The notes under the pieces were generated by a model. It was not told the DNA's origin. It searched no databases and saw nothing but the letters and a program-made list of their open reading frames with translations. This document shows positions 16,947-38,200 of a stretch of DNA of 64,000 nt, piece after piece. The stretch covers positions 62,001 through 126,000 of the forward strand of contig CALSCP010001735.1 in the NCBI GenBank assembly GCA_943704425.1. The letters run 5' to 3'. The translations under genes were made by a program, and so were the position numbers. The stretch is from Ministeria vibrans ATCC 50519. Lineage: Eukaryota > Protista > Filasterea. The stretch's first letter is position 1; every line of letters starts with the position of its first letter.

Positions 16947-16983
16947 GTACCCGTCTCGTTGGTCGTGCACCTCAATCGCATCT

Positions 16984-16984
<1 letters not shown>

Positions 16985-17050
<66 letters not shown>

Positions 17051-17057
17051 NNNNNNN
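16985..17057. repeat. (CA)n microsatellite ending in a 7-N gap
   Basis: Seen directly. Confidence 0.98.
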
Positions 17058-17625
17058 ACACGCCACACTAACAAACACAAGAGCAAACAAACAAACACAA
17101 CGTGCTCAGCAGGCACTCAAAGCCACAAAGACTCATGTCAAAGCTTAAATGACTGAACCGCACCATCCAAACTCAAACTTCATCCATTGCAACCAAGAAC
17201 ACCCAACCAAACGCCACCACCATCGCCTTGGCCAGCCAAAACTGCCAATACCATGCCAGCATCCACCGCCACAGACCCACCGTCCGACATTAGCAACAAA
17301 CTCAGACTCTATCTGCCGCAACAGAAAATCTTCGTTTGGCCCACATCTCATACCACGTCACCATGTCTTTCACAACATTTGACGCCATCTTCTTCAGACG
17401 AACACGCTCACTCTCACTGAAACGCTCCAGCACCGCTTGTGGCCACATTCCTGACACAAGAACCGATGGACGCATCACTTGAAACGGCACAAGCCACAGT
17501 GCAACCTGCGCGCTCGCACCATCCTGTGACGCATCCTTCAACCATTCTTGAAAGCCTGCCTGTAGTACGCCCAGGGCGCGCTCTATACCACTAACCCCAG
17601 ATGCAGTGCACGCAAACATGTGGTC
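17058..17625 (-). mobile_element. 5'-truncated non-LTR retrotransposon copy: ORF2 C-terminus plus GT-rich 3' UTR
   Basis: Starts at a (TTAGGG)n junction with VDHMFAC (end of a CCHC knuckle) and ...WYEMWAKR; 17060-17217 is repeated at 18374-18528. Confidence 0.65.
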
Positions 17626-17659
17626 AACCCTAACCCTAACCCTAACCCTAACCCTAACC

Positions 17660-17730
17660 GAGACATGAACTTTACGATTGTATTCAGACGTTTAACACAT
17701 ACTCAAGCAGCTTATGGGGCCCACTCGGAA
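17660..17730 (-). mobile_element. 71-bp 3'-terminal fragment of the telomere-associated retroelement
   Basis: Near-identical to 18138-18208, with the same junction ...AAAGTTCATGTCTC|GGTTAGGG. Confidence 0.75.
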
Positions 17731-17762
17731 TAACCCTAACCCTAACCCTAACCCTAACCCTA

Positions 17763-17966
17763 GAGACCTCAAAGGGAATCTCCATTACCCCCTCCACTGC
17801 ACCATCACGCACGCTCCACCGACTGGCACCCCACGCACGATTGTGGAACACTTCGGGCACCAACATCCGTTGCTGGCGAGGCACCAGCACCCCCGCTGTG
17901 GCCATACGCCCGCTCAAATCAAACGACGCGTCCGTCACCATCAGGATCACACCGTCACCATTGTCA
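17763..17966 (-). mobile_element. Internal retroelement fragment, RNase H-like N-terminus
   Basis: Translates as VILMVTDASFDLSGRMATAGVLV, resembling the RNase H TD(G/A)S...GxG start; flanked by telomeric tracts. Confidence 0.5.
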
Positions 17967-18137
17967 AACCCTAACCCTAACCCTAACCCTAAGAACGACA
18001 TCCGCGCGCTCCACTCGACGGCCCCGGCCATCGCAACCCAAGCGAATGTACACGCCACTGATTGGCGTCGACCCTAGTAAAGCACACCAGTCCCAACGCA
18101 TGGCCAGGTCTGCCAATTAGTAACCCTAACCCTAACC

Positions 18138-18529
18138 GAGACATGAACTTTACGGTTGTATTCAGACGTTTAACAGATACTCAAGCAGCTTATGGGGTCC
18201 ACTCAGAATACATCGCGATCCTCAACACACACATCAAACACAAACACACACAAGAGGATATTACAAGCAACACCAAAGAACAAATTTAATTTCAAGACAA
18301 CACACTTAATATCAAAAACAAACAATCACGAACATTAAGAGAACAACACAGTCACACACAAAGCAATTAAAAGCGCCACAATAACAAACACAAGACCAAT
18401 CAAACAAACACAACGTGCTCAGCAGGTGTCCAAAGCCACAAAGACTCAGGTCAAAGCTCAAATGACTGAACCGCACTATCCAAACTCAACCTTCATCCAA
18501 TGCAACCAAGAACACCCAACCAAACGCCT
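18138..18529 (-). mobile_element. ~390-bp 5'-truncated 3' UTR copy of the telomere-associated retroelement
   Basis: Links the two repeat blocks: shares its 3' end with 17660-17730 and its 5' part with 17060-17217; telomeric tracts on both sides. Confidence 0.75.
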
Positions 18530-18976
18530 CTAACCCTAACCCTAACCCGGTCGTATCTTGGCTCGTTAGGAATGGCTGACTGACGATAATGTTTCAGTGG
18601 TAGACGTATTTCTCTGTCGCAGGTGTTCTTCTTGCGAGGATGAGGATGAATCGGATGACTAGTTTGTCTTGTGGGACACGGAGTGTTGGCCAGCCGTTTA
18701 ACAGTACTTGTTATCATGTCGTTAGTATTGTACTTACAAGAAGACACGTAATACGGGAAAGCGGAAAAGTACATATTTGACACCTTGTAACATACGATCT
18801 TTTTTCATTTGCACGTACGTCGTTGACATCCTTACAGCGTACAAGTGACTATGTGTTTTGTTCTGGTGTGCACGAGTCAAAAGACGTCAGTCGTCATGAA
18901 TCTCACACTACCCCACCACACACAATGTCTGGATCATGTCCATCTTTCTTATTGTACATATATTTTACTAAACGTT

Positions 18977-21900
18977 TCAACGGTGCTTTCTTCTCGACCC
19001 CCAGATTGACTTGTCCTTCTTTCGTCGAAAAAAAGGGCGTCGATCAAGAAACTGCTGAGATGGACAGAAAAGGTCGCTGAGCATACCATTGCCAACGCCA
19101 TCTTCTTCCTCGTCTTCTTCATCTTCATCGTCATCTTCTTCCTCGTCGTCATCCTCATCATCATCTTCCTCGTCTTCGTCTTTCTCCTCATCATCTTCTT
19201 CGCTCTCCTCCTCACTCATCGCACCATGTTCAAGCAGTCGTGCGAGACCACCAACACCAAATCGCGGAGGAAACCATACCGCTTTGTCCTCTTCCTCTTC
19301 CACCTCAACCACGCGCCGAATACGAATCGCTTTCCTGCGCTTATACTTCTCCAACAATCCATCACAGTCCGTCACGAGCTTCTCCAGCCTCCCATCAAGC
19401 GCTTCTTCCCTCTGCGTAAAGTACTTCTGCAGCGCCTTGATGTGATTGCTCGTCTCGCGCTCCTCCTCTTGCATCACGTGCTCGCCCTGTCCCGCTCGTG
19501 TTCGCGGCGCCTGTTTCTCCCGCCTCAGATATTTGACCACTCTCTGCAGTCGCTCAGTGGGTGTCAAGGGCTTCTTCTTTGGCTCACTTGTCGCTTTCTT
19601 TGTCGATGCCTTCGCTTTGGCGGGCTCTGGCACAGTCGATTTCAGTAACACGCTCGACGTGGGCTGTGTCCTGCCCATCCGCAAGAATGCAGCATGTGCC
19701 AGTGCCGCATTCTGATTGCCAAAACGTCTGTGAATCACTCCGGATGGGGACACGACAGTTGATGCAAGCGAAGAGCGCGGTACAGACTCAGTCACAAGGC
19801 GGCTTGCGTGAGGGACGGCGGGCGCTCGTGTCGCTGCTGAGGCAGCAGAGTTTGGAGGCCACGGAATAGACTGAGTGTCGAGATGACTCAGATGAGCAAC
19901 CGACGTCGGTCGTGCAGTGACTGCGGAGGAAGTAGAGGCCAACGACTGAGGGGCAGAGTGTGCTTGTGCTCGTGTAAAGTCAGAGGCGGCTGACGCAGTC
20001 GACACTGGAGGTCGCAGCGTAGACTGAATGACAAGACTCGGATGAGTGATAGATGTGGGTCGTGGGGTGGCTGCAGAGGCAGCAGTGACCGGCCATTGTG
20101 GAGCAGAGTGCGCCTGTGCTAGTGTGGAGGCAGTTGCGGCTGACGCAGCCAAGACTGGCACTACGGGCGGAGCCAGTCGGCTCGCAGGCGCAACTGTGAC
20201 CGGTCGTGTCGCAGCTGCCTTGACGCCTGTCGATGTCTTGGCGGGTTTGGACGGAGGCGTTGTGCTGGCTAAACTCGTTGTCGCTGTCACTGTCGTCACT
20301 GGCACGGCGGCGACGCGCGCTCGTTTCGTCCGCTCCTTTTCCTTTCCCTGTCCATCGCTACTCCCAGACGGCCGTTTTTTTGTGCCCACCGTCTGCGACA
20401 CCATCACCACATCGCCATCGGCATCTTGCAAATCGTCCACCACCTCAATCACATCGTCTTCCTCAAGGTCCACCATCACAAATCGCAGTCCCCGTCCAAT
20501 GCGCCACCACACCACGCGCGGCACTCCACGCATCCCCAACACTCCCGCATAGTACGGTGTCACATCGTCCACGGTCCAACTGCAGTCGCGCAGTGCCGCT
20601 GCATTGATCACCACACGTGTCACACGGTTTGCATAGCACGCGCGGGTGCACGCCATCGTGCGGTACACACTCGCCAAATCCAGTGTGTTTACGGGTCGTA
20701 GAAACAGCGCCCACTGTGGCATGTTTGTAAGCGCGGCCATGTCCACCTGCGCCTGCGTGGGTACACGCTCGGCCAGTGACCAGTGTGTCAGATCGACAAA
20801 TGGCACACCACACCGCTCGATAATCTCCACCAGCTGTGTTCGGTCCAGTGTCGCATCGGGCACACCGCTCTTGAGTGCACGCATCTCATCTGGAGACGGG
20901 GCATTTTCCATGCGCAAACCGCGTACCAGGGCGCCTCCTCGCCGCTGCAGCTTCACCTGCACAAACGCCTGGTACTTAAGCACCGCGAGTCCCGCTCGCT
21001 CGCAGTCCGCTGCAAATTTCAAATCCTCGCGAAAGGGCCACGGGCGAAACCAGACATTGCGCGCGACACACGCACTCACATGCACCAGTACAAGGCTGTA
21101 CACGTAGGTGCGTCGAAAGGATGAGGTCGCCACATGATGCCCGTTCTGTCGGAAGATCCCCAACATGCCATAGCGCTCGGCCTTGCCCGCTCGCTCAGGC
21201 ACAGTCATGTTGAAGGTCGACTCGTAGCGATAGGGCACATCGGGCTCCTCGCCCAGCAGCTGACGCTCCAGATGCGCAAGCACGTCAAAGAAGCTGACAG
21301 GTTCCACAGCGAGCACAGGTGAGTGGGGTGAAATGCGGTCGCCCGTCACCGCCGCCAAATGGTCAATATTGTCGTCGCACAGAAACATCGTCTTGAGACT
21401 AAAATAGTGCGCCACTCGCTGGCACACAAGTCGCGCATATCCAACGCCACGCGACACATCGCACAATCCCGTCTCGTGCTCAACTGTTTCCGGCAATTGC
21501 AACACAAGCGCCACATGTCCAACTCGCGCCACAAACCCCTGATACTGCTCCGCGCGCACCACCACCACCCGCACAATGGCCGTCTCGTCAACACCCAAAG
21601 CGCGACTCCAGTCGTGTCGCCCGTCCAACCGCACTGACGGTACAAACACCCACGAGCGCAACAGCCGAGAATTAGATTGTCGTCCCACACCAACGACACG
21701 ACCCTGTTCCAACTCAAACACGTCCTCAAATGCCTTCGGTATCCACAGTGGACTCTGAAATCCCTCGACCTCGAGCACCTGATGTTTCCCCTCCACTGGC
21801 CCTCGCACCACAGCGGCTGCCGTGCGAAAGCGATATAGCTCCTCCGACTCACGTACAGAGAGCTCTGTCAAGGGCACAACCTTTGGCGGGAGCGCAACTG

Positions 21901-24900
21901 TGACATTTTGACCGGAAAATCTCTCGAGTTGCGTCGGCGAAAAGACAAAGTCGGGTGTGAATGGCTCGCTCAGAATGCCGTCGTATTTGCTTGCCGACAC
22001 AGACCAGTCGAAGCGCTCCCGGTCAAGGACTGTGCTGGCTATTGGAAAGAACCAGTCGTCGCGCACAAATGACACACCGGGACTGAGCGTGATCCGCGGC
22101 GCAATCACAGCACATCGTTCGCACTCACGTTGGGCTGTCACACCGTCCGTCGCCGCTTCACCCTCCACCTCGCTCTTGAGCTGCACCAGTAACGACGCAT
22201 ATGTGCCTGTCTTTCCAATTTGTGGCGCAGCCTGCAACACCAGTCGTCGCGTGTGCACTTCGCCCGCTGCATTCTGACCGTCGTAGCTCTTGTTACCACG
22301 CACCGGCTCAAAGTGGCTCCACATGTGTGTGGTAGTGTCCACTCTTTGACCTGCAATGCGTGTCATGGTCGTGTCGGGACTGCTGATGATCGCCTCAAAC
22401 GACGCGGCCCTGTCGCGCTTCCTGTGACAGGGACCAAAAAGTCCATTGCCCACCAGAAGCGACGCATTGGGTGTGGACGAGGGTGCATAGCGACAGACAC
22501 GACCGAGATCCTGAACAACTGACGAGAGCGAGCTGGGCGTAGCAGAGTAGCGCGAACGCAAGTCCATAGTGGAGAGAGACACCGGAAAGGTGTCGCCAAG
22601 ACGGCCCTTTTCGACCACCAGAAGCAGTGTGGGAATGCCCTGCAGGTGCGAGTATTCGCGGATTGGCCGATGCACATGACCACAGTCGGTGCAGGTCACA
22701 TGAAAGGTCGACGGTAATTGCGGTGTGGCACACTGATCACACGTGTCGCACGCGCGTCCACACTGCAGCCGATGGTTCCAGTAGTTGCATGCCATGTTGC
22801 GCCCTTCCTCACGGCGGAACATGGTGTCCAGACTCATTCCGCCAAAGTCACATAGCAGAAGAAAGCGTCGCTGCCAGCCCACCAGATCACGAGCCTTGCG
22901 CACCATTTGCCACATTTGCTTGCCCATGGGAATGTCTTCCACGCGCACGAGGGCCATTTTTCCATGCTCAATGGTCAGATCCGCCACAACCCGCTCCGTC
23001 TCGAGTCGCGTGTCAAAGCGCCAAAAGGACTCGGTGAGTCGCGGTCTCTCACGCAGCCAGCTCCAGAGTAAGTCTATCGCGTTGGCGACAGTGTCGAAGT
23101 CCTCGAGGGCAAAGCAATGTTTGACAAGCTGCATGCGAGTCGCGTGGGAGTCGCTCTCTGCGAGGTGCGTGGCATAGTGGCGCGGAAAGAGGCGAATGAG
23201 TGAGCGAATGCTGTCTGGCACAGAGTCAACAAGTGTTGACCAAATCTTGCGCATCGCATTGTGACATCCAAACCAAAAATCACGACAATCTTGAAGAATG
23301 GTCTGCCCAAAGGCCAATGAGAGGTCTGGGTAAAAGTCGATACGGGATTCGAGCACGGAATTGACCACGACAGAGAGAGCATAGTCACACATGTGGGCCT
23401 GCATGCTCTTGGACTTGCCTGTAGCGTGGCTGGCGAGGCGCGTGAGAAGCGGGTCGGTGCGGAAGAGACGGCGGTGGGGCTCGGGATAGCGCATGGAGTT
23501 GAGGTAGAATGTGAGCGAGCGGTAGAGGGGTGTGTTGGGCGACACGGGCGCGTCGTCAATAAAAAAGTGCTCGCTCAGACGATTGCGCGACCGATCATGT
23601 GTGAGGTGCAGTCGAGCGGGCACAGTGTCGTCTGCAGTGACACTGAAAAACAGAGAGCCAGCACTGAGCGAGACCATGCCGTAGCCCGGCACGCGATGGA
23701 CCGTAAAAAGGTGGTCGGGGCGGGCGGTCAGCGCGGCAGTGAGCTGCGAGATTCTCAGTGAGTGTGTGTCGCTGTGTGACTGGAGAACACGATCCGGAGT
23801 GCCGTTCTGGTCGCAGGCAAAGAGCATCACACGAGTATGGTCGGAACTGGCATCACTAGGGAGTGTCACAAACAGCCACGCATGTTCCCAGTCAAAGGTG
23901 CCTCCCATCGGCTCAGTCTCGTCCACACAGACGACGCTGTCGGCGCGTGGACTCACAACGAGCACAGCATCCGACTTGAAGTGGCGCAGGACAATGCGAC
24001 GAGCCACATTTCGAATGCGCTGTTGCAAGTCGGCCAGACAAGTGGTAGCGTGCAGGGTGAGCGGGTGAAAGGCCAAAAGTGAGTCGGACCAGTCCACAAT
24101 GTTGGCGGGCAAGACACGCGAGCGACAGGTCAGCACGGCGTAGGGAGTCGCCGACACGAGCAGGACAATGACGTTCTCTTGGTCCAGCAGGGAATTGACG
24201 AAACAATGATTGGCACCTTCGTTTTTTATGCCCCAGTGACACTCGTCAGCAATGAGGACAAAGAGCGTTCGGGGCGACGCTTTTGCCTCGAGCTGTTTCA
24301 TTTTGGGGTTATTGCTTGTGTCGTAGCGATGTATGATGTCGTGCGGTGTGAGGCGTGCCTTGCGCAGACGATCGTTTGTCTGCTGCTCCAACGTGAGATA
24401 GTTGGCGGTGCCAACGCGAAAGCTGATCTTGTTGAAGCGCGCGAGGGAGCCGCCGTAGAAGCTGCGGATGCGCGTCAAAAGAACGCCCGCGAGATCGCGC
24501 TGTGCCGGAAAGATCCCCAGATGATCCGCACCGGGAGGTTCGGGGACATCAGGCAGTGGTGCAGAGTCACTTTCGTCGACATGGTCGAGGTCAATAAGGT
24601 CCAGCTCGAGCGTGTCTTGCGTAGCGCGCTTTGAAGACTCTCGAACATCGACGACGGCGCTGTCATCGGGCTCTTCGTTACCCAGCTCGATCTCACGGTA
24701 GAGAGATTCGGACACTGGGATTTTGTAGCCAATCAGAGTGCCCTCGTGGTATATGTCTGTGTCAGAACAGTTGCGGTGCAAGGGCGCTAGGTGATCGGGC
24801 GACAGCACGCAGTGATATCGCATTCCCAGTTCCAGTTTCTCCAATAAGTCGCTCAGAGTCAAAGGGACCCTCCGCAACAGGGGGAAAAGACCGCGGACAA

Positions 24901-25042
24901 CACTCTCAGCGTGTGCTTCGTCGCTGTCGTCGGCCCGGATCGGCTGAATGAGCTTGGTCAAATCAATGCCGGAAGGCGGAACAAACTCATTGAGGCTAAC
25001 CACATCGCGCATCAAGCACGCGTACAAAAGATACATGGTCAA
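18977..25042 (-). CDS. GREB1-like protein: circularly permuted SF2 helicase plus TET/JBP-associated glycosyltransferase (TAGT), low-complexity and acidic tail
   Basis: LIADECH (II), VSATP (III), KGRLGDTFP (V), QDLGRVCRY (VI), then Walker A AAPQIGKTG; then FVPS, VVVVRAEQY, GVGYAR, LCDDNI, FREDLKF (GT-A/TAGT); true ends may involve introns. Confidence 0.85.
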   Translation of the reverse strand: MTMYLLYACLMRDVVSLNEFVPPSGIDLTKLIQPIRADDSDEAHAESVVRGLFPLLRRVPLTLSDLLEKLELGMRYHCVLSPDHLAPLHRNCSDTDIYHEGTLIGYKIPVSESLYREIELGNEEPDDSAVVDVRESSKRATQDTLELDLIDLDHVDESDSAPLPDVPEPPGADHLGIFPAQRDLAGVLLTRIRSFYGGSLARFNKISFRVGTANYLTLEQQTNDRLRKARLTPHDIIHRYDTSNNPKMKQLEAKASPRTLFVLIADECHWGIKNEGANHCFVNSLLDQENVIVLLVSATPYAVLTCRSRVLPANIVDWSDSLLAFHPLTLHATTCLADLQQRIRNVARRIVLRHFKSDAVLVVSPRADSVVCVDETEPMGGTFDWEHAWLFVTLPSDASSDHTRVMLFACDQNGTPDRVLQSHSDTHSLRISQLTAALTARPDHLFTVHRVPGYGMVSLSAGSLFFSVTADDTVPARLHLTHDRSRNRLSEHFFIDDAPVSPNTPLYRSLTFYLNSMRYPEPHRRLFRTDPLLTRLASHATGKSKSMQAHMCDYALSVVVNSVLESRIDFYPDLSLAFGQTILQDCRDFWFGCHNAMRKIWSTLVDSVPDSIRSLIRLFPRHYATHLAESDSHATRMQLVKHCFALEDFDTVANAIDLLWSWLRERPRLTESFWRFDTRLETERVVADLTIEHGKMALVRVEDIPMGKQMWQMVRKARDLVGWQRRFLLLCDFGGMSLDTMFRREEGRNMACNYWNHRLQCGRACDTCDQCATPQLPSTFHVTCTDCGHVHRPIREYSHLQGIPTLLLVVEKGRLGDTFPVSLSTMDLRSRYSATPSSLSSVVQDLGRVCRYAPSSTPNASLLVGNGLFGPCHRKRDRAASFEAIISSPDTTMTRIAGQRVDTTTHMWSHFEPVRGNKSYDGQNAAGEVHTRRLVLQAAPQIGKTGTYASLLVQLKSEVEGEAATDGVTAQRECERCAVIAPRITLSPGVSFVRDDWFFPIASTVLDRERFDWSVSASKYDGILSEPFTPDFVFSPTQLERFSGQNVTVALPPKVVPLTELSVRESEELYRFRTAAAVVRGPVEGKHQVLEVEGFQSPLWIPKAFEDVFELEQGRVVGVGRQSNSRLLRSWVFVPSVRLDGRHDWSRALGVDETAIVRVVVVRAEQYQGFVARVGHVALVLQLPETVEHETGLCDVSRGVGYARLVCQRVAHYFSLKTMFLCDDNIDHLAAVTGDRISPHSPVLAVEPVSFFDVLAHLERQLLGEEPDVPYRYESTFNMTVPERAGKAERYGMLGIFRQNGHHVATSSFRRTYVYSLVLVHVSACVARNVWFRPWPFREDLKFAADCERAGLAVLKYQAFVQVKLQRRGGALVRGLRMENAPSPDEMRALKSGVPDATLDRTQLVEIIERCGVPFVDLTHWSLAERVPTQAQVDMAALTNMPQWALFLRPVNTLDLASVYRTMACTRACYANRVTRVVINAAALRDCSWTVDDVTPYYAGVLGMRGVPRVVWWRIGRGLRFVMVDLEEDDVIEVVDDLQDADGDVVMVSQTVGTKKRPSGSSDGQGKEKERTKRARVAAVPVTTVTATTSLASTTPPSKPAKTSTGVKAAATRPVTVAPASRLAPPVVPVLAASAATASTLAQAHSAPQWPVTAASAATPRPTSITHPSLVIQSTLRPPVSTASAASDFTRAQAHSAPQSLASTSSAVTARPTSVAHLSHLDTQSIPWPPNSAASAATRAPAVPHASRLVTESVPRSSLASTVVSPSGVIHRRFGNQNAALAHAAFLRMGRTQPTSSVLLKSTVPEPAKAKASTKKATSEPKKKPLTPTERLQRVVKYLRREKQAPRTRAGQGEHVMQEEERETSNHIKALQKYFTQREEALDGRLEKLVTDCDGLLEKYKRRKAIRIRRVVEVEEEEDKAVWFPPRFGVGGLARLLEHGAMSEEESEEDDEEKDEDEEDDDEDDDEEEDDDEDEEDEEEDGVGNGMLSDLFCPSQQFLDRRPFFRRKKDKSIWGSRRKHR

Positions 25043-26214
25043 ACGTCAACAGGAGCGGTGAGCGGTAGGGGAAGAGAAGCAGAAATGAACCCAGACCAGA
25101 GAAGCGCACGGGCGAAAATAAGCAAAGGTTCGCGAATACACAAGATTCGTGCGTCCGACCAGGTCAAAGACGATACGAGTTGGTGAAGCTTGCCTGTAAA
25201 CCTAAGTAGGGCAAGGAAAAAGGCGAAAGGGACTGATCTGAGGCATTTTGAGAAATGAGTAGGGGTTTAAAAGCGTCGTTGATTTTCAACGACGAAATTT
25301 CTCTTGCGTCCCGATTTGTGGCGTCAATGTCTGGTACCAGTATGGACTCTCTGTCAGCTCTGGAAACTCGTGACTACCCGTTTGACATGCGCACTGCGGA
25401 AATTGCTGGTGAGTCTTATCCTATCTCTTCCCAAGAGCGACAACTTTTGCCAAAGTGTTTTTGGGATGACATTCACTGAGTTCTTGGCGGGGGGCGAGTC
25501 TATTGCCCATCCCGCCCTTCTTGAGAGTGACGTTGTCAAGAATGAGCAGAAGATTAGCATCTCAAGCTTTTGCAAGTAGATAGCTCGAGAGGTGTGTTGG
25601 ATTTTGTATTTTATCTTGGGATTTATCTTCTTTTTAACACATCTTCTCAACACACTATAAAGGGTATCACTTAGTTCGTCAGACTAGCTAGTCACTAAGA
25701 CTAAGACTAACTAAGAATTAAGATCCACAGACAGACACAGTCACAGGGGACTTTGTAGTTTGTAGTCACATATGGCCAGGGTGGCGCTGCAGAAGTGCCC
25801 CGTACCGCATTTCGTACAGGACCTTCGTAGTCAGCAAAAGGCGGCAGTCCGATCTCTTTTTTATTTTCACACACACTTTTTAGCACTTCTTCTCAAACAC
25901 ACTACAAACGGTATGCGCTCTATTGGAGTTTGTGTTAAGACGTTGCCTGGCGTCCTGCTATCATCGCGAACGACCGCCTCGCTTTTTATTGTTCTCTTCA
26001 GCCAATGAGCGCTCTTCTGCGTTTGCGACAGATTCGGTGTCATCCCCGCCCATATCGCCTTCATCGTCGTCGGTGTCGCCTCCCCTATGAGTATAGCGGA
26101 TATGGTGGTGCTTGCATGCGTGGAATGTCGTCAGCGACACGCTGTTGGGGGCCGGAGGACGGGAAAAAAAAAACACATTCTTGATGCGTGTTTTTGGCAT
26201 TTCTGTAGACAATC

Positions 26215-27172
26215 ATGGGCGGCGGACTTACTCTTGGCGCAGAGATCCCTAACTTTGAAGTGGATTCGACTCAGGGACCGATGAAGTTCCACGATTACCT
26301 CGGCAACGGCTGGGGCATTTGTAAGCGACGATCAACCCAAACAAACCGCCGCTTATCCGTTTGTTTTGTTCCATCTCAGTGTTCTCCCACCCTGCCGACT
26401 ACACCCCTGTCTGCACGACTGAACTTGGCACTGTTGCCAAGCTTGTTGCCACGGGCGAGTTTGCCAAGCGCGATTGCAAGGTGAAGGATGACGTGTTGAA
26501 TATTTATGGCCTGACTCTTTTTTGTTAGGTCGCGGCACTCTCTGTCGACGATATTGAATCTCACAAGGGATGGGTCAAGGACATCGGTATGCTTCTGTTG
26601 TATCCTATCACCATCGTAACGTCATTGCGTTTTTTCAACACACAGAGGCGTCGCAGTCAACCACTGTTGCATACCCCATCATTGCTGACCCCAACCGTGA
26701 GTTGGCTGTCAAGTTTGGCATCCTCGACGCCGACGAGAAGGTATACGAATGTAGAAGAAGTGGGGAGGATCACTCAAGGAACGGAGGTTCATGTCGCGTA
26801 GGACAAGGCTGGCGTTGCCGTGACTGCACGCGCTGTGTACATCATTGGCCCGGATAAGAAGCTCAAGCTGTCCATCCTCTACCCGGCCAGTAAGGAAGAA
26901 AAGTTGAAATTTACAGAAGAAATTGACTATGTCCGTGTGTAGCGACGGGACGCAACTTCAACGAGATCCTGCGCGTGCTGGACTCTCTGCAGCTCACGGC
27001 CAACCATAAGGTGGCGACGCCCGCCAACTGGCAGCACGGCGACAAGTGCATGGTTGTGCCGTCGCTAACCGACGAGGAGGCCACCGCGCGCTTCCCCAAG
27101 GGTTTTGAGAAGGTCGCGGTGCCCTCGGGCAAATCGTACATCCGACTGACTCCCCAGCCCAACGTTGATTAA
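26215..27172 (+). CDS. PRDX6: 1-Cys peroxiredoxin
   Basis: [50 protein letters not shown]; ends PSGKSYIRLTPQP. Confidence 0.96.
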
Positions 27173-27639
27173 ACGCGAACCGCCCTTTCATTCATTATTG
27201 TGTGTCTGTATGGTGTGCGTGTATGAGTAAGTGAGTGTGTCATTTGTGCGTGTTTCCTATGACGGCATTCATGGCACCCCGCACATTGATGAGGCGCGAT
27301 GCAGCAAACTTGAGTGTTTTGGGGAATGCGTCAAAGAACGGGATGAACATACAGGACTGTGGGCGACAAACTGTGTCACTGTGCTTTACAACGAAAAGCA
27401 AAGCTGGAGGTGATTGGTACAATTGGATGCATTGGACGTCGAATTTGTCATCGACAGTAGTTCTACTCACTATATGAGTCTTGCCTCTTGAAGTCTACGG
27501 CGGAAGTATTGTTTTCTTTTTATTTTGTTTCAGTCTTTTTGGATTGAGTACAGCTCTTGATTCTCGATAATAAATATTTTCTAATAATATTTTTTTTTTT
27601 GCTCACGGGAAGCTATCGTTCTCTGTGTTTGACATCGCA

Positions 27640-30600
27640 ATGGACAAAATCCGAACCCTAAAGATGAGGCATCGCGACAGCATTCGTACGCTCTTGCTCT
27701 TGTCTCTTTGACGCTTTTTTTTCGAATTATCAGCTCCACTCACTCTCTCGTGGTTTACAGCCGATGTCCAGCGAAGCATGTCCACTGTGTCTGCCGACTC
27801 GGCCGTGTCCGACGAGACCAAGGCGTTTTTCGAGCGCTTTCACGCCGTCCGGCAGTCCGAGCCAAACTCGACCGGTTCGTCATTCCCCATTTGCCCGGCC
27901 CCTTCTCGTTTCTCCGTTGGTCAGCATTGCGCTGTGCAACAACCAGCGCTACTTCTGCGTTTCACACCAGCATTTGCACACTGACCTTGCGACACTTCGC
28001 TTTGTTTCTGTTTTTCTGTTTTTCTCCCATTCCATCAAAATACGCCGTTTAGAGGGTAATGCAACGTGGAATCGTGTGCGTAAGACAGTACAAGCCGCAC
28101 GTGAGGCTAGCTCCAAGCATGTCGCGTCCGCTGTCGTGGACCTTCTCTCGAAACGAAACGAGATGAAGGACACAAAAGCGCTATTTAACGAGACGTTTTT
28201 GCCGCCTGTCAAAGGCGACGAGGTGAGGTGGTGTTAGGGTTAGGGTTTGGCTCGTGTTGCCGTAACTATGTTCATTCTGGTTCTTTTCTTCTCATTCATT
28301 GCAGTTTGCGACGTTGTATCGAGCACTCGTGGCGGCCGTCTTGCAGCGAGTGGGCGCTGTCAAGGAAGGGACGACGGACGCACAAGTGTTTACGTACATG
28401 CGCGAAGTGTTCAAGATGGACAAGAGCGCACACGATGCTCTGGTCGAACAGGAGCGCCGTCACCAGCGAGAGAGTGGTGACGCCCAGCATCCCGTTCTCC
28501 ATGTTGACCTAGTGTCGGCGTCGGGTGTGTACCCAAAGGACGCGACGGGCAAGAGTGATCCCTTTTGCATGCTTGGTGTCGTGCCATCTTCGTTGCCTCT
28601 TGATGACGTTGATACGAGCAACCTTGACAAGTCGTCTACTATCGATCAAAATCTCAATCCAGTCTGGAACGAGACCTTCTCTTTGTAAGTTTCATTTTTA
28701 AAGTGTGTCTGTCGAACTGTACCGCTGTGTGTTTTTGTTGTCGTTGACTCTCACTCACTAATTGTGTGTGCGTGTGTATGTGTGTGTGTGTGTTTTTTTT
28801 CTTTACCTTTTCTTTCATCTCCATAGTTCGCTACCTGAAGACCCAGCTGGTCTCTCGCTATTTCTTGAAATGTGGGACGAGGACGAGGAGAGTGTTGCAA
28901 GTCTGTTTCTTCACAACAAACTCTTCAAGAAGTTCCATAAGAAGAGTGTGTACGTGCTCAAGCGTACCAGCAACTACGCTCATGACCTTTTTTGTGGTGT
29001 GTTTGCGTGTGTAGAACGGACAACACGCAGTTTCTTGGTCGAGTGGTTGTGCCCTTGTCAGAGATTACTACAGATGGCATTGCTCGTGAATTTGAGTTGC
29101 AAAAGCGTTCTCGAAAGTCTCACGTGAGCGGCACGGTCTTTCTCAAAATTCGCTTTGTTTACGAACGCGTACGATGCTTATTGTTTTTACATCATTTGAT
29201 GATTGTTCTTTTTCCCTTTTTATATTTTTGTCACCTTTGTAGATGACCGACGTGGAACGCTTGAACAAGGCTGTGTCGTCGACGACGGGGTCTGTCACTG
29301 ATACATCCCAATTGTTCGAGTATATTGTCGGTGGTGAGTCACACGACGTGGCTTCCTCTATCGCTTCATGACTTTTTTGTCTTCCTTTTTGTCTTCCTTA
29401 TTACAGAGATTGTTGCACACGACAGCGTTGCCTACATCGACCCAGAGTGCACACGAGTATGGGATGGTCAGCTGTCAGCTCCTGCACGCTTTCTTCTGCG
29501 CATGTTTGCCCTCCTCAACAATGTGTCCCCTTCGACGCAAGCAACAGCGCTCCTGCGTCATCGTGTGCGCTTTCTCACCCGCTTCCCTCTTGCACTTGAC
29601 CTTCACTCGGCTCTCGACTCCTCCGAGGACGGCATCAATGCCATTCGTACGTCTGCATTGACCGTCGCGGGCCAGACCATCTTTCACTCTACGTTGAGTG
29701 TGCTCCGCGTCACGCTCCTTGAAATCCTACGCCAATACAAGCTTTTCTATCCGTCGAGCGACAGTCTTGGTCAACAGCGATTTAGCGACTTGGTTGGCCT
29801 TCTCATCACTCTCGACGCTGTGCCTATTATGCGCAAAGCTCGTGGTCGTCTGCGTGATGTTGAGTCCACCTCTACTCTGGTCGAAGATGTTCGATTGGCC
29901 CTCTTGGTATGCCTAGCATGATTCCTTTCTCGCTTTGACCTTCTTGATTCTCTTTTTTTTTTCTGTTTTTGTATTCGTGTTTTGTCTCTAGACTTGTGCA
30001 GGCAACACTTATCGTCTCATGTCGGCCGAATGTGAGCGCGACACTCCCGACCGCACCGACGCGACGGTAGCCAAACTCTCCCGCCTGGCCTCGCGCATTG
30101 CCAAGGAGCTCAAGATCACACACACGGTCTACTCCAAGGCCTTCCTTCAGTACGTCATTAATAACAAAAATAATAATAATACTACAATAAGGCGTGCTGT
30201 AATAATAATATAATAATAAGAATAATAATATCATTAATATTATTAGAGTAATAATAATCATTAATTTGTTTTTACTTCCTTCCCTCCTCTATCAAGGCTC
30301 CCTGGTGTGGACGTGTTTGCTCTTGAGGCTGTCTGCTTCTCGAACCCACTGCTTGACGAAGTGGTCAATTTGACAGAGCAGAAAAAGAGGAGTGCGGTGG
30401 ATCCTACGTTGATGACGCTTTACCATACGCTGCGTGAACTTGACCGCGATGTGTGGTCTCTCATGTCTCCTGTGTACTCACAAACTTGCATGCATCCCTG
30501 AAAATATACTTATTTTTATTTTTATCTCGTTTTCTTTTTTCAGATCTCGAAAGGAGATCGTGCGTTCCGAAAGCTACTCGGAGAGGTTTAGTCCGTTTGT

Positions 30601-32185
30601 CATGGACTTTTTGACGGCAAGTGCTAGCAAGACAGAGGAGTGGATTCGTCGTGCCATTGCTGAAGACAAAGTACATCTCTGCTCCTTTGTCTGTTGCAAA
30701 CATTGCACTTTCTCATGAATAATTTATAATTTAATTATTTCTTATTGTTATCAATGCTTCTTTATGATAGGTTGTCCGTGTTGGTCAGGAGCTGCACTCA
30801 TCGAGTGTTATCGACATGTTCACCGCCTTTCATCAGGTAATCTCACTGTTTCTCCCGGTCTTTTAGCTTTGTACTGCTTCTGTTTTGCTTCTGCTTTGCC
30901 TCTGCTTTGCTTCTATTCGTCTATTTTATCACTCATCATGTTTTTAGACGTACACTGTGCTGAACAACCTTGACTGGCCTGAGCCCATGATGAAGCACAT
31001 TTTCTTTGTAACTTTCACTCAGGTACGTGTGAACTTTCTGTGAATTAGGGTCAAATACAAGTCTTACTCTCATACACTGCTTTGCTCGTCTGGCGCAGAT
31101 CGTTACGACGGGTGTGAGCATGTATGGCGAAACAATCAAAGAGACCCTCAATGCGAAAGGGTTCTACGACACGGAGGGACAGTTTGACGTCACCGAAGAG
31201 GTAACCTTTCAGTATCAGTGCTTCGAAATTATTAAACGCGCTCGTTCTCTTTCTTTTACAGTTGTGTGTGACGCTGAACAATCTTGAGACGGCCCGGAGT
31301 CATTTGGTAGAACTCTTTGATCAAGTTGATGGGGTTGCACAAGTGGAAACGGTATATAATATACATTAAGGCGTATGTTTTCCCTTCTAAAAATTTTGCC
31401 CATGTGAACTCTTGATCAGGTTCGCAAATTACCAGAGTTTGCCCACTACGAGTCACCCATGCCATTGCTCCTTGACGAAACGTACGAGTCACTGCGAATG
31501 ATTCTCGATCAACTTGTCGAGGTCGTCGTCAAAAAGGTACCAACGAGCAAGAGCAATGTTTGATTTTTCTTTTTAGTTGTCTTCGTTTGGTGACTTTTAT
31601 GTTAATTTTATGGGTGTTATTCTTCTTTTCTTTCTCTGTTCCGTCTTAAAAATTAATTGGAAGCGTCTTCTTCTTTAATGGATATTTCTCTTTGTAATGT
31701 TGCTTTTGGTTGGTTTTTAGATGTCCCCTGACATTACAGGATATCTGCGTGCGGCAATCACGGGCGATGTGGAGGACGATGGGGCATCATCTTCCTCGTC
31801 GTCGCTTCTGCACTCGCTCTTTACCGTGCGCTCGCGCGGCCATCGTCTGCGTACTGCGACCATGAGCTCTGATGACATACACGCTCTTATCCAGCCGCTC
31901 CTTGACTATCTCGACAGCAACCTGAGCACACTCAGCGAGAATTTTTTCCCAAACATCTTCCAGGCGATTTTGAGCGAGTTGTGGACAGGGGTTCTTGAGA
32001 GCATGCATACACTGCTGCTGCCCCCCTGTGGAGGCGGGGACACCGAATCACCATTTCCCGCCGAGGCTGCACTTGCTGGCACTGCCCTCAAGGTAATAAT
32101 CGTAAAAAGAATATGTCACAAACAAAGACGGAACAAAATAAATTAAGTAGTTATTATTATTATTTGTTGTTGTTGGTGGTGGTGG

Positions 32186-32229
<44 letters not shown>

Positions 32230-33369
32230 GTTTGTTTGTTTATTTTTGTCATCATCATTAATTTGTATTATTGTCGTTTTATGACCTTTTTTAGTATTCT
32301 CTACTTCAGATTTTGTATCAGTTCTTTTACTTTGTTTATTTTTGTAATCATCATTTTGTATTATTGTCGTTTTATGACCTTTTTTTCTTTTACTATGTTT
32401 ATTTTTGTAATCATCATTAATTTTGTATTATTGTCGTTTTATGACCTTTTTTTGTTATTTTCGACTTCAGATTTTGTATCAGTTCTTTTACGCGGATGGC
32501 GATGGAATGAAAAATGCAAAGTTGGAAACGGAACTGTACGCGAGCGTGTGTCACTTGGTGGAGCTGTACGCGGTCAAAACACCCGCTCTGGTGGAAATGT
32601 ACTGGAAGGAGAAGAATCGTGTGCGCAACGACGAGAGTGACGCGACGTCCAAGTTGGGCGAGAGGAGCGACGCGGGGTTGGGCACGCTGGTGGTGGGCAC
32701 TCGTTTGGCACCCATGAAGGAGCGTGCGCGCATTATCGTGCACCTTTTCAGTGCCCACGATCTGCCTGTCATGGACAGCAATGGCCTTTGCGATCCCTAC
32801 GTCATCGTCAGTCTATTACCATCAGAGCTCATCAAGTGTGATCAGAAGAAATCCAAAGTTGTCAAGAAGACGCTCACTCCCACCTTCGACCAAAGTCTTG
32901 AATTGTATGTTGTTTTTCAGTTTCCGAGCCCAATTTGACCATCATGACGTTTGTCTAATTGGTGTGTTTTTGTAGTGTTGTGCCAATTGTCCACGCACAT
33001 AAGGTTGTTGTCCATTTGGAGATGTACGATTACGATCTGTTCAGTGGCGATGATTTTATCGGTACGAATCAGTTGTGGAGGGACAACATCCTTTGTTGTG
33101 ATGAAACATTGTTTGTGTTGTTTTTTTTTTCTTCTTTCTTTTCTTTCCTTTTATTCTTCTTTTAAACATGTTCAGGAGAGGCAATCGTACCGGCTACGCT
33201 GACGCCGAGCAAAGAAGAGAAGCTTAAGCCAGTGTCGGTGTTCTTAGCACCAAGCCAACGTGACAACGAGAGCAAAGAGGCTTCGACTCTGTTTGGGCTG
33301 TTGAAGCAGCGCAGTGACGCCGGAGACGAGTCGGCAGCTGCCTTTGTCAAGACGGCCACACGACACTGA
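27640..33369 (+). CDS. Munc13-4/BAIAP3-like C2-MUN-C2 vesicle priming factor, many exons
   Basis: C2A PKDATGKSDPFCMLG; MHD segments KTEEWIRRAIAEDK, CVTLNNLE, IQPLLDYLDSNLSTL; C2B DLPVMDSNGLCDPYV. Confidence 0.9.
32186..32490. repeat. Intronic (TTG)n plus three ~55-bp AT-rich repeats and a duplicated splice acceptor
   Basis: Unit tttatttttgt(c/a)atcatcatt...gtattattgtcgttttatgacctttttt occurs three times; ttcagattttgtatcagttctttta occurs twice. Confidence 0.85.
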
Positions 33370-33505
33370 ACCAGTGCGACCCTAAAGTTTTTTTTTGTAT
33401 CTTGATACAGTTGTTCAGACACCCTCTTTTTTTGTCTTTTAGAGCCTGTCCGTCGAGTCGAAAAAGAATTGAAAATTATGTTTTTTTTTTTTGTATTTAC
33501 GCATC

Positions 33506-33850
33506 TCACTTGTTCACTTTCCTCTACAAATAAGAAGAATAACGAGTCAATTAACCAATTTAATATCAACACAACCAAAAAAATTGAACAAGTGTGCAGT
33601 ACAACCACGACACGTTTAGCAACTCATTTCTTGTTTGCTGTACCTGGAGATTGGACACCATGTCGATATAGGAGACGGCCGTGTCAGAGCGGTCATCCTG
33701 CAACATCTGCAAGAAGTGCATTCGCATGCGCTGGTTGTCTTCACGGATCACATACAAAATCGGATAAAGACTGGACCGCGCGCGAATCGCTTCAATGCAC
33801 GCACGCACTCGAACATTTACTGGGCTCTGATCCAATGTCGGAAGAGCATC
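33506..33850 (-). CDS. SEC24: SEC24 last two exons, displaced from 42024-45875
   Basis: DALPTLDQSPVNVRVRACIEAIR...MLQDDRSDTAVSYIDMVSNLQ|RKVNK* matches the SEC24 C-terminus. Confidence 0.85.
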
Positions 33851-33853
33851 CTA

Positions 33854-33901
<48 letters not shown>

Positions 33902-34431
33902 GGGTTCTTGGACGAACTGTGCTTTGTTCGCAGTCATGGCGGAAGTATTGCATGCTTGAGAGGATGCGTTGGCGGTGGGGGTTGACCCGGCGCGTTGCTT
34001 TTATGGCAGAGTCAGAGAAGAAGACAGAGAGAGAGAAAAAAAAAAAGAAGAAAAAAAAAACGAGCCATCAACAATTGCAAAATTGAGACTCCCTGCTTGA
34101 CTTGTGGGGACGCAAGTGATGCACGGCACGCCGCTGGTGTGTGAGTGTCCCGCTTGTACTTTGTGATGACGGTGTCGCCCGATACGGTTGCGATGTCGGA
34201 CGGGATTTTCCGAGTTTCATCCCAGGTCGCTCGCGTTGAGCCCATTCGTATCGGAGAATCGGGTGTGCTTTTCCCGGGAATGTGTGTGGTGTAGGACATT
34301 AATTGCATGTGGTGACAGAGGAACGGTGGGGCCTCTCTGTATTTATGAGTCTGACTGGGTCGCATTACTTACTTGTCAAGTTTCCTACTGCATCTCATGA
34401 AATAAATAATATCATACAATATTCTCTTTAG

Positions 34432-34975
34432 TCGTTTCTTGGCCTGGGCAACACCGCCACGATTGACGTGGATTTGGACAATGCGGACCAGCACAAGATG
34501 GTGGACATTCGAAACCCTTTGTTGGGACGCAAAGAGAAACTTCCTTTGTACTTGGACGGTGACACAGTGAGCGGCACGGTACGAAAGAAAGAGTATCGCG
34601 TGGAGGACGAGCGAGTTTACGTCATACACACTCACACACCCATACTGCCCCTCCTGTTGATTTTTTCAGGTTGATCTGCGGTTGCGGAATCCCGGAAAGC
34701 CTCTGGAGCACCAAGGCATCACAGTCGAGTTTATCGGTCACATTGAGGTACACCAAATGCCCTCCTTCTTCAACAGTAACCGATACAATTTCTTTATTTG
34801 TATGGCGCGTTGCATTTTAGTTGTTTTACGATCGAGGGAACCACAGCGAGTTTACGTCGCTGATCAAGGAACTTGCGCCTCCGGGCGCACTCATGCGCAA
34901 CCAGTCATTTCCCTTCAAGTTTGAGAATGTCGAGAAGCCGCACGAGTCATACAACGGAATCAACGTCCGTCTGCG
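34432..34975 (+). CDS. VPS26: Retromer subunit VPS26, 5' part only; stops at a (CA)n tract; start codon not located
   Basis: LYLDGDTVSG, LEHQGITVEFIGHIE|LFYDRGNHSEF, FKFENVEKPHESYNGINVRLR. Confidence 0.93.
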
Positions 34976-34979
34976 GTAC

Positions 34980-34980
<1 letters not shown>

Positions 34981-35058
<78 letters not shown>

Positions 35059-35064
35059 ACACAC

Positions 35065-35095
<31 letters not shown>
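34981..35095. repeat. (CA)n/(TA)n microsatellite at the VPS26/MON2 junction
   Basis: Seen directly. Confidence 0.97.
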
Positions 35096-35099
<4 letters not shown>

Positions 35100-35248
35100 A
35101 TTATAATATTAATATAATTATAATCATTATAATTATTTTATTATTATAGTTATTATTTTATTATTATCATAATAATATTATTATAATTATTATTATAATT
35201 ATCTTGATTCTCTATTAATTATTTTTCTTATCTCTTTTCTACCTCTAG

Positions 35249-38200
35249 GTCAAAACACTTCAAATTCTCATGTCCATGTTGACCGTCTCGAAAGACCTTC
35301 TCGTCGACACTCAACTTGCCAGTGCCTTTGTTCTCTCGTTTCACCTCTATTTCAGCAAAGACTCACTCGTGCAAAACACCGCCGCCGCCACCATTCGTCA
35401 GATGGTCAGCGAAGTTTTTGAGCGTGTTGTCGACGAGGATACCTTCACCAACGGCAGCAGCTCAAGCACCGCCACGCAACTTAGTCGACAAAACAGTACT
35501 ACCGCCAATGACGAAGATGCGACCGACGCTGCGTTCACTCCGCGCCTGCGTCATCGCAAGGCACCCTCGTCACTGCTCCCTTCCGCCAGCAACGCCTACC
35601 TCCTCTTTCAGGACCTTTGTCATCTTACCAACGCGGATCCTCCCTCATACTTGGTCGGCCTCAACGAAATGTCGCGTCTTTTTGGCCTCGAGCTCATCGA
35701 GTCGGTTCTCTCCGAGTTTCCCAACATGTTTTTGCAGCACCCCGAGTTTTCATTTCTTCTCAAGGAGCGCGTGTGTCCCCTCGTCATCCGTCTCTTTTCG
35801 CCCGGCACTCACGGCCCAACTACCTCATCCGCTACTTCAGCTGGCGCCGCTTCTTCTTCGACCGCTGGCGGTTCAGGTGCCGCAGGGACTACCTCGTCAG
35901 TGGCAACACCGGCATCGGCAATGGCAGGAGGTGGAGTTTTGGGCATCGTGTCTGCTTCCTCCTCCTCCTCCTTCTCCTCAACCTCGCGCAACACCAGTGG
36001 TTTGGGGACTGGCGAGTCGGGTGGCGCGTTGACCGGCAGTTCGTCGGCGTTGAATGCCGCCGAAGAGCGCTCGGCCTTTGGTGTTGCCGTGCGTCTTCTT
36101 CGCATTGTGTCCATTCTCGTGCAACGTTTCTACTCGCTGCTCGTGACCGAGTCTGAGATTTTTCTCTCGATGCTTGTGCGATTCCTCGAGGGCGATCGTG
36201 TCATGTGGCGTCGCACACTTGCTGCCGAAGTCATCCAGCGTCTCTTTGCCCAACCCGAGCTACTGCGGTCCGTCTGCATGTACTACGACATGCGCGAGCA
36301 CTCGGCGAAGATCTTCCAAGGCATGGTTAACGCCCTCAGCGACTTTATGCAGTCTCTCCAGCGACGCGCCGCTACCGCTTCGACTTCGTCTGGCTCCGCA
36401 AGTGGCGGTGGCAGCGCTGGTACCGGTATCAACAACAACAACAGTGGTGGTGGTGGTGGTGGTGGTAGTAGTAGTGGCGGCGGCGGCAATGGTGGTAGTG
36501 GTAGTGGCATTGGCATTGGCAATAGTGGTCCTAGTGGGACAGGTGTTGGCGGGTCAAATCTAACTGGCGGCTCGTCGTCGGGTGGTGCCGCTTTGGGTGC
36601 TTCATCGTCGCTTGTGGGCAGCGGAGGCAACCTGGGCGGTATGCTTCCGGGACCCCTTATTGTCAACAACAAACGACACATGCTCATTGAGATGCTCGAC
36701 AAGCACGACTCGCCCTTTATCAGCGATCACTATGGCTTTTCCGTGGCCTTTGCTTGTCTTCTTGAGCTGGTCAACACCGTCTCGTCACTTGTTATGTACC
36801 GCCCGAGCGACCCGTCTTCAGTACCCGGCACGCCTGCTTCTGGTTCGACCGCCGCCCTGCCCTCGACCCAGTCTACTGCTTCTCCTTCTGCTTCTACTAC
36901 AACGGTTGCCTTCTCCTTGTCGTCGTCCACATTGCTGCCCATGCATCCAGTTGTGCGTGACGTGAAGCGACACACCGATGAAATTGCCGAAAACGAGGAC
37001 TTGAGTATCTGGCGCGAAATGGTTGCTTCTCTGTGGCATGGAGTGCTTGCCGCCTTTGCACCGCTGCTTGACAGTGGCAAACTTGATGAAAGTGGTCTCC
37101 AGGCGGTCCTCAAATCCTTTCAGACTCTTACCAACTTGTGTGGTGTACTCAATTTGGGTACGCAACGCGATGCGTTTGTGACGGTGCTCTGCCAACGCTC
37201 GCTCCCCCCTCGCTACGACCCCAGTGCCCGCATGACCACGGCCAATGTTCAGTGTGTGCGTGCGCTGCTCAACGTGGCACACTGCCTTGGAGCGGTGCTC
37301 GGACCGAGCGCCTGGTATTTGGTGCTGGAGACCCTGATGGAGGTCGATGCCGTGTTGGGTCTGAACACGGCTGGGGCTAGTGCAGCCATGTCTCTTAGCA
37401 TGGGCGCAAGTATCAGTTCGTCGGGAGTCACGCAGGTTGCGGCGGCACCGGTTGTTTCTGCATCGGTCAAGAGCAGTCTGCCGCAGCACGAGTTGTCGCT
37501 GTTGTCGTCGACTTTGGCGCGTCTGTTCGAGTCGAGCGAGTACCTTTCCGACGCGGCCCTCAACCACATGCTCAATGCACTGTGTCGTCTGAGCCAACCG
37601 TCGTCTTCGACGTCAGGTGCGGCGGACAAGAAGAAACTTTCCAGCGGTGAGATGGTCTTTGCGCTGACTCGCATTGCTGAGATTGGTGTTGTGAACGCTA
37701 CGCGTGTTGGGTGCTTCTGGACGCCGGTGCGCGATCACCTTTTGTCAATATGCAGTGACACTGCGGCCATGCCGGTGGTACGAGAGTGTGCCGTGGATGC
37801 ACTTGCGGCCATTGGCCAGGCGGCACTGACTGCTTCTGTGTCGCTCGCGACCAATTCGTCGTTGCAATTGATGTGTCTAGAGCCGCTTCAGGCGCTGTGC
37901 ACTGCGTCGCAGCAGGTAGACGTGCGTGCACGTCAAATGGAGGCGTTGGTGGCGATTCTACGGACGCACGGGGACGCAGTGCACGCACACGCGTGGCCCA
38001 TTCTCTGCGAGATTGCGTCTAGTGCGGTGCAAACGGAGCGAGAGGCGGGCAACAGCGACAACGACGACACCACCATTAGCATGGTGAGCACCACATGGGG
38101 TGCGCGTGTGGTGCGACCGGCGTTTGTTGCGTGCGAGCTTGTCGTCAAGGACTACTTGCAGGTAGTGCCGTTGGTGCAGGTTCAGTCTGTCGTGGCACTG

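Follow-up and report, generated by a model that had tools for sequence, protein, structure and literature searches.

The window analysed here is a stretch of 64,000 nucleotides from the genome assembly of Ministeria vibrans ATCC 50519 (contig CALSCP010001735.1, positions 62,001 to 126,000 of the forward strand). In an intron of the MON2 gene, a (CA)n tract and a gap of seven Ns (16985-17057), which mark a scaffold mis-join and lie outside the element described below, are followed by an array that extends to the start of unique subtelomeric DNA at 18549. Five co-oriented (CCCTAA)n tracts were read directly from the sequence, all belonging to the minus strand in the sense of the element (17626-17659, about 5.5 repeats; 17731-17763, about 5.5 repeats; 17967-17993, about 4.5 repeats; 18123-18137, about 2.5 repeats; and the proximal tract, 18530-18548, about 3 repeats, which borders the unique DNA). 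A 12-mer telomere motif gave 12 overlapping matches on the plus strand of the array stretch, compared with 0 expected from 100 shuffles. The original prediction, made from the letters alone, had described five such tracts and five segments between them, and both the direct reading and the shuffle test bear this out. The five segments (17059-18548 including the tracts) are minus-strand fragments of one non-LTR retrotransposon family.

Copy E (18138-18529) comprises the final 392 nt of the 3' UTR; it is truncated at its 5' end and has the canonical 3' end, GTCTC followed by GGTTAGGG. Copy B (17660-17730), the final 71 nt of the 3' UTR, has the same canonical 3' end. Read on the minus strand, both copies end in ...AAAGTTCATGTCTC and pass directly into GGTTAGGG, with different start points, as had been predicted. 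Copy A (17059-17625) comprises the C-terminus of ORF2, from the end of a CCHC knuckle to the stop codon at 17302-17304, and the first approximately 243 nt of the 3' UTR; it has a 105-aa ORF end, VDHMFAC...WYEMWAKRRFSVAADRV, followed by the stop. It overlaps copy E over 155 nt at 92% identity, which agrees with the earlier description of a third segment that overlaps the longer one and extends into coding sequence. Copy A is interrupted by the N gap (17051-17057, itself preceded by (CA)n), in which its 3' part is lost; a contig joint leading from 18362 back to 17061 indicates that A-type copies elsewhere include the remaining UTR. Segments C and D had been counted as segments but left unexplained. 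They are internal ORF2 pieces truncated at both ends, including the 3' end, with C (17764-17966) covering approximately residues 1752-1819 and D (17994-18122) approximately residues 1967-2007 of the 2222-aa ORF2. Protein walks place both in the same element as A, B and E and on the same strand; C belongs to the RNase H-like region, in its N-terminal half, and D lies further downstream. The 3' end of D is non-canonical and carries a TTAGGG cap, and the 3' end of C is capped with telomere repeats. Poly(A) is absent from the 3' ends of the segments in the array, also in agreement with the prediction.

The 392-nt sequence of copy E has at least 48 matching places in the 29.7-Mb genome to which the window belongs. 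Nearly all of these 3' UTR matches share the same end base, more than 20 distinct 5' starts were found (query positions 2, 30, 55, 75, 85, 109, 121, 137, 149, 168, 206, 245 and 272, among others), and many of the matches lie at contig ends; the fixed 3' end with variable 5' truncation that had been proposed from the array is therefore found genome-wide. Throughout this assembly, the element marks contig ends. In the same assembly every copy is 5'-truncated, and a full-length copy is absent there. The recurrent 5' start sequence is CAGTTTTATTC.

Flank extraction yielded 79 unique fragments in the fetched loci. Enough flank was available for 30 canonical 3' ends, of which 19 continue with GGTTAGGGTTAG in a single register and one in another; GGTTAG is thus the register of 19 of the 20 telomeric 3' junctions. 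Non-telomeric targets starting with GGT or GAT account for five of the 30, and a 3'-end variant subfamily (...CATGT plus TTT or TTC), which differs from the canonical end in the last three bases only and adjoins GGTTAG-like sequence or non-telomeric DNA, accounts for another five. The upstream (5') junctions use all six telomeric registers. Interstitial copies are bordered by target-site duplications (TSDs) of 7-17 bp that start with GGT (8 bp at locus L012, 17 bp at L017, 7 bp at L023 and 13 bp at L028), with similar TSDs at L010 and L021. The expectation that copies are flanked by TTAGGG thus holds for 20 of the 30 canonical ends, the remainder being inserted, with TSDs, at GGTTA-like sites. 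The fragments abutting telomere repeats run in the same direction as the G strand in nearly every case; L042 (contig C2059), which is followed by (CCCTAA)n, and L035 depart from this. A (TTAGGG)2 match at 28234-28245 of the window was considered as a second telomere and rejected as a short intronic match.

A constant 3' junction, varied 5' truncation and TSDs form the signature of endonuclease-initiated target-primed reverse transcription with a strong sequence preference. Since the insertion point on the top strand is TTAG^GG, the primer is the C-strand end ...TAACC-3'. The predicted TTAGGG-specific LINE, with its sense strand on the G strand (SART-like) and primed from the C-rich strand, follows from these junctions. 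With its reverse transcriptase (RT), constant 3' end, variable 5' truncation and TSDs of variable length, the element is a LINE, and its one fixed position and one orientation in the repeat place it in the telomere-repeat-specific functional class of SART and TRAS. Because the final 150 nt of the 3' UTR hardly differ between copies, they show no covariation, and no claim about UTR structure is made.

Master copies of the element are approximately 8.9 kb long and comprise ORF1, the 2222-aa ORF2 and a 3' UTR of 477 nt without poly(A). All copy comparisons were made on natural copies, and the master copies come from other assemblies; because of 100% identity, these were assumed to belong to the same organism. 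A contig from Tara Oceans (L093), which came up in a scan of metagenomes, is 100% identical to the RT fragment; it has one open frame of 1329 aa with an RT (Pfam RVT_1, E = 1e-16, catalytic motif FVDD) and a zf-RVT match, followed by the stop, the 477-nt UTR, the canonical end and, after 3 repeats, the 5' UTR of the neighbouring element. The complete ORF2 (P0115), found in a homologue search, is encoded on contigs from an NCBI assembly (L094), an ENA metagenome (L095) and Logan (L096), which differ at 2-7 of 6669 nt (99.9% identity). An RT-encoding master copy contiguous with this 3' UTR, which the original prediction called for, is thus present in natural contigs (L093 and L095). On L094, three repeats precede the 5' end of the element and ORF1 begins near position 597; ORF1 contains 20-aa tandem repeats, and a search of it for a Pfam match found none. 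Tandem full-length copies are spaced by approximately 3.5 repeats. The host occurs in seawater and algae metagenomes; an alga as host was considered and rejected, since a search for LHC genes found none. Transcription support consists of a few contigs from one run, whose RNA status is a guess.

It is highly unlikely that the fragments are ordinary subtelomeric repeats (TAS- or Y'-like) spread by recombination and break healing, without present retrotransposition or sequence-specific integration. Such an origin would be in keeping with the arrays at contig ends, with the segmental duplicates among the apparent copies, where fragments recur with identical flanks (e.g., eight that all begin at UTR position 313 and share one flank), and with the 3'-truncated, repeat-capped pieces (at least ten elsewhere in the genome, in several registers), which show that erosion and healing occur. 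Recombination alone, however, predicts neither the combination of more than 20 5' truncation points with one exact 3' junction and register, nor the TSDs at interstitial copies, nor an intact 2222-aa endonuclease-RT frame conserved across assemblies.

ORF2 carries an RT and a CCHC knuckle, and from its sequence it is predicted to have an AP-endonuclease-like and an RNase H-like domain as well. The RT was aligned with APE-LINE relatives at an hhalign probability of 99.6%, and its best Foldseek matches were human LINE-1 ORF2p (E = 2e-14). Among 1.84 billion representative proteins, the best identity was 28% at E = 1e-12, with none above 28-30%. The nearest (long) RT relatives all carry APE domains.

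In an RT-anchored alignment of the N-terminal region, residues N109, Y306, D356, N358, D514, D538 and H539 fall in columns that are invariant across 19 APE-LINE relatives; the catalytic, metal-binding Glu is replaced by Asp (motif QDT), and the other seven of the eight catalytic residues match. A MAFFT alignment of the endonuclease region alone was mis-aligned onto RT columns and was discarded. The Pfam match to Exo_endo_phos (E = 0.025) was below the cut-off, hhalign gave E = 0.19, a custom APE HMM ranked the real sequence third of 1001 against shuffles (not significant), and a PDB sequence search with the endonuclease region gave no match. The modelled N-terminus (mean pLDDT 53) matches the EEP-fold proteins INPP5B, TDP2 and APE1 in Foldseek (E between 3e-4 and 3e-3), a match that is partly circular because an APE-LINE alignment guided the modelling. 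The endonuclease is probably of the AP type. The classification between APE and restriction-enzyme-like endonuclease (REL, or RLE) that had been proposed as a check accordingly resolves toward APE, on the catalytic columns, the EEP-fold model and the sub-threshold Exo_endo_phos match.

Downstream of the RT, the motifs MATDAS, GEVVAIVMAL, IWTDN and KAH...WNERAD supply the D, E, D and H...D of an RNase H-like domain in the correct order, and they are kept in a paralogous family of the same genome at 35-41% identity. The nearest Atlas clusters of this region are RNase_H (0.91-0.93); Pfam and PDB sequence searches with it gave no match, and a single-sequence AlphaFold model reached a pLDDT of 37. 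A word-based homologue search and PDB sequence searches with the C-terminal half of the protein found nothing. The CCHC knuckle shows a weak, sub-threshold match to zf-RVT (E = 6e-5 when the C-terminal fragment is searched, 0.0018 with the whole ORF). [quoted passage not shown]

Even less likely than an origin as recombining subtelomeric repeats is attachment without an endonuclease, with the telomeric 3' overhang as primer, as in HeT-A/TART or in the endonuclease-deficient Penelope-like elements Athena and Coprina. The latter are also telomere-associated, with truncated ends capped by telomeric repeats, and the strict telomere association, the absence of poly(A), the short telomeric tracts between copies and the weak HMM signal of the endonuclease would suit this mode. 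Priming from a G overhang would, however, yield an antisense element on the G strand whose 5' end is distal, whereas the element here has its sense sequence on the G strand and its 3' end on the distal side. The TSDs at interstitial copies need staggered nicks, and the APE catalytic positions are conserved, one as E to D. Athena and Coprina furthermore have a Penelope-type RT, no endonuclease and the opposite orientation, in contrast to the LINE-type RT and the TSDs found here.

It is very likely that the array consists of layered fragments of one APE-type, TTAGGG-targeting non-LTR retrotransposon family and has grown by insertion, erosion and healing. Judged from the junctions, the family would integrate into double-stranded (TTAGGG)n, with target-primed reverse transcription as the mechanism. 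The endonuclease would nick the C-rich strand, probably at 5'-...TAACC^CTAA-3', and the freed 3'-OH would prime cDNA synthesis at the 3' end of the RNA (...GUCUC), possibly helped by read-through telomeric RNA annealing to the primer. Priming from the C strand would put the sense strand on the G strand, always in one register and with the 3' end of the element toward the chromosome terminus, and incomplete reverse transcription would account for the variable 5' truncation. A cut of the second strand 7-17 bp away would generate the TSDs, which would be visible at non-telomeric GGTTA-like sites only. Erosion of the chromosome end, or breakage into the element, followed by healing through telomerase may have produced the 3'-truncated fragments C and D and their caps in arbitrary registers. 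Later copies would insert into the new distal tract, so that age would decrease outward.

The identities to the master copy on L095 are, from proximal to distal, 91.6% for E, 94.2% for D, 97.5% for C, 100% for B and 99.6% for A. Identity that rises outward implies that the pieces become younger with distance from the unique flank, in line with an entry of new copies into the distal tract. The gradient is consistent with stepwise growth at a chromosome end, and copy E is probably the oldest piece of the array.

A chromosome end was also where the original prediction had placed the array. In the assembly this does not hold, as the array lies approximately 79-80.5 kb into a scaffold that measures at least 126 kb, inside the MON2 intron and away from the scaffold end. 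MON2 resembles its animal orthologues most closely, which is consistent with a unicellular holozoan host. In a contig of a run that is probably RNA, the MON2 exon ending at 16948 is joined directly to an exon near 35272. One exon of VPS26 ends at approximately 34994 in gtacga(CA)n, the rest of VPS26 opens contig C238, and the 18-kb block between has (CA)n tracts at both boundaries. MON2 splicing across the block, the split VPS26 gene and the (CA)n boundaries together indicate that the block from 17058 to approximately 34990 is mis-joined and belongs with C238, and that the array is internal in the scaffold because of a mis-join through (CA)n. The array would then form the outer end of the mis-joined block, with CCCTAA on the plus strand as at a left chromosome end and the N gap on its distal side; to this extent the predicted location may stand.

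That the array itself is an assembly artefact, made of chimerically joined telomeric reads, has a very small probability, below that of endonuclease-free attachment. The N gap adjoining the array, the demonstrable mis-join of the scaffold at (CA)n and the 100% identity of copy A to contig C1583 would be compatible with such an artefact. Against it, contigs from two independent samples (X1 record 8 and X3 record 22) span the proximal junction (unique flank, 3 repeats, start of copy E), with an independent 2022 sample reproducing it, and dozens of loci, as well as four other assemblies, show this architecture again.

Among known elements, SART1 (R1 clade) is likewise an APE-type LINE that occupies one fixed nucleotide position in the telomeric repeat, with its sense strand on the G-rich strand and the C-rich strand nicked and serving as primer. 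SART1 works in short repeat tracts, with approximately 3 repeats needed (PMC7265360), comparable to the tracts of 2.5-5.5 repeats between the copies here. Unlike the present element, SART1 has TTAGG as its target, a poly(A) tail and an insect host; ORF2 is approximately twice as long here, and the two elements probably differ in clade, too. TRAS1 of B. mori (R1 clade) is also a telomere-repeat-specific APE LINE, whose endonuclease sets the cleavage site, but it has the opposite orientation in the repeat, poly(A) and the TTAGG target. Given the absence of poly(A) and an ORF1 without a Pfam match, the element would not be filed under the R1 clade, to which SART and TRAS proper belong.

Tx1-1_ACar (L1/Tx1 group) is listed among the LINEs that insert in vertebrate-type telomeric repeats (PMC10088271). 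It differs from the present element in its vertebrate host, and L1-like elements have a C-terminal zf-RVT-type knuckle in common with the present element, where the match is weak. Capsaspora CoL3 was considered as a candidate because its TSD was never determined, and identity with it was rejected: the CoL3 RT peptide and A-tailed 3' UTR (given in that paper's supplement) differ, and the 3'-end motif is absent there.

Least likely of all is a telomeric element of the CRE/MoTeR/FoTeR type. MoTeR1 and FoTeR of fungi share the TTAGGG target, the full and truncated copies between short telomere tracts and the truncated ends healed by repeats, and a CCHC motif downstream of the RT in the present element would suit this type. 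MoTeR1 and FoTeR have, however, a restriction-enzyme-like endonuclease downstream of the RT, no APE and the 5' end toward the terminus (PMC12857005), whereas here the 3' end points to the terminus, the N-terminus aligns with the APE catalytic columns, the nearest RT relatives are APE LINEs, and the region downstream of the RT holds RNase H-like motifs and the zf-RVT knuckle, with no REL-like domain (RHD...E...PD) seen in it. By its sequence, the element thus appears to lack both the C-terminal REL endonuclease and the terminus-directed 5' end that define this group.

The family described here is a new, very divergent telomere-repeat-specific LINE, whereas such elements were already known from a small number of organisms, the silkworm among them. 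With it, the phenomenon is seen in a new host lineage; the analysis also exposes the scaffold mis-join at MON2 and VPS26. Telomere-repeat-specific LINEs are rare, and they are the best models for the reading of DNA sequence by an AP-type endonuclease and for the coexistence of mobile elements with telomerase. The present family targets the vertebrate-type repeat TTAGGG, its intact and nearly identical master copies can be recovered from environmental samples, and its arrays provide an ordered record of insertion, erosion and healing. More tentatively, and with somewhat less than even chances, the family could represent a new APE-LINE lineage at the level of a clade, with a TTAGGG specificity independent of the insect SART/TRAS elements and the lizard Tx1 element, and might likewise be an active and regular component of most chromosome ends at present, in a marine protist that still uses telomerase; the lineage would be marked by the RNase H-like domain, the absence of poly(A), the expanded endonuclease and an RT at most 28-30% identical to any of 1.8 billion representative proteins. 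If true, this would supply a naturally TTAGGG-specific nicking enzyme and, beside the silkworm, a second model for the coexistence of retrotransposons and telomerase.

The scaffold is mis-joined around the array, and the proper place of an 18-kb block (within positions 16947-35270 of the window), which is flanked by two (CA)n tracts and contains the array, is elsewhere. The MON2 exons that end at position 16947 and start at about 35271 are directly spliced to each other in a contig from a probable RNA run. One exon of VPS26 stops at about position 34994 in gtacga(CA)n, and the remaining exons of this gene lie at the start of another contig of the same assembly, C238. The gene nearest to the array is a 2021-aa ORF on the minus strand (18977-25042), transcribed towards the array; a possible parallel is that telomere-linked helicases are reported to adjoin fungal telomeric retrotransposons, as described for the CRE-clade element FoTeR (PMC12857005). 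A (TTAGGG)2 sequence at positions 28234-28245 was rejected as a telomere, being a short interstitial match inside an intron, directly past a splice-donor-like site.

Regarding copy number, the summed contig k-mer depth across the array (positions 17002-18405) was 35-400x that of the flanks (two samples), which is not a copy number and hints that true copies far outnumber the assembled ones. Eight 80-nt copies of the 3' end (L011:2681-2760, L062:2247-2326 and six more places) have one 5' start and one upstream flank in common, and represent a segmental duplication rather than separate insertion events. Another LINE family is present in the same genome (contigs C2581, C1463, C1833, C1111 and C304; loci L071-L074), with an identity of 41-42% in the RT, the RNase H-like region and the knuckle.

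ORF1 of the telomere-specific family, for which no Pfam match was found, carries tandem 20-aa repeats (KERQQGEKKECAVTTAPPER) in the master copy from an ENA metagenome (L095:1-300) and in an NCBI assembly (L094, with an N gap at 1432-1486); the number of repeat units varies from assembly to assembly.

Elements are arranged head to tail in a Tara Oceans contig (L093:4464-4500), in the master copy (L095:8069-8123) and in the downstream flanks of copies L018 and L008. At these junctions the canonical 3' end is followed by about 3.5 repeats and then by the identical 5' start CAGTTTTATTC... of the next element. A locus at C2059:1-140 (L042) differs from every other junction in its head-to-head layout, an ORF2 fragment being followed by (CCCTAA)n in inverted orientation. 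The common 5' start recurs although the copies that precede it differ (three or more distinct ones), and may correspond to the transcription start, or else to a rule requiring about three repeats.
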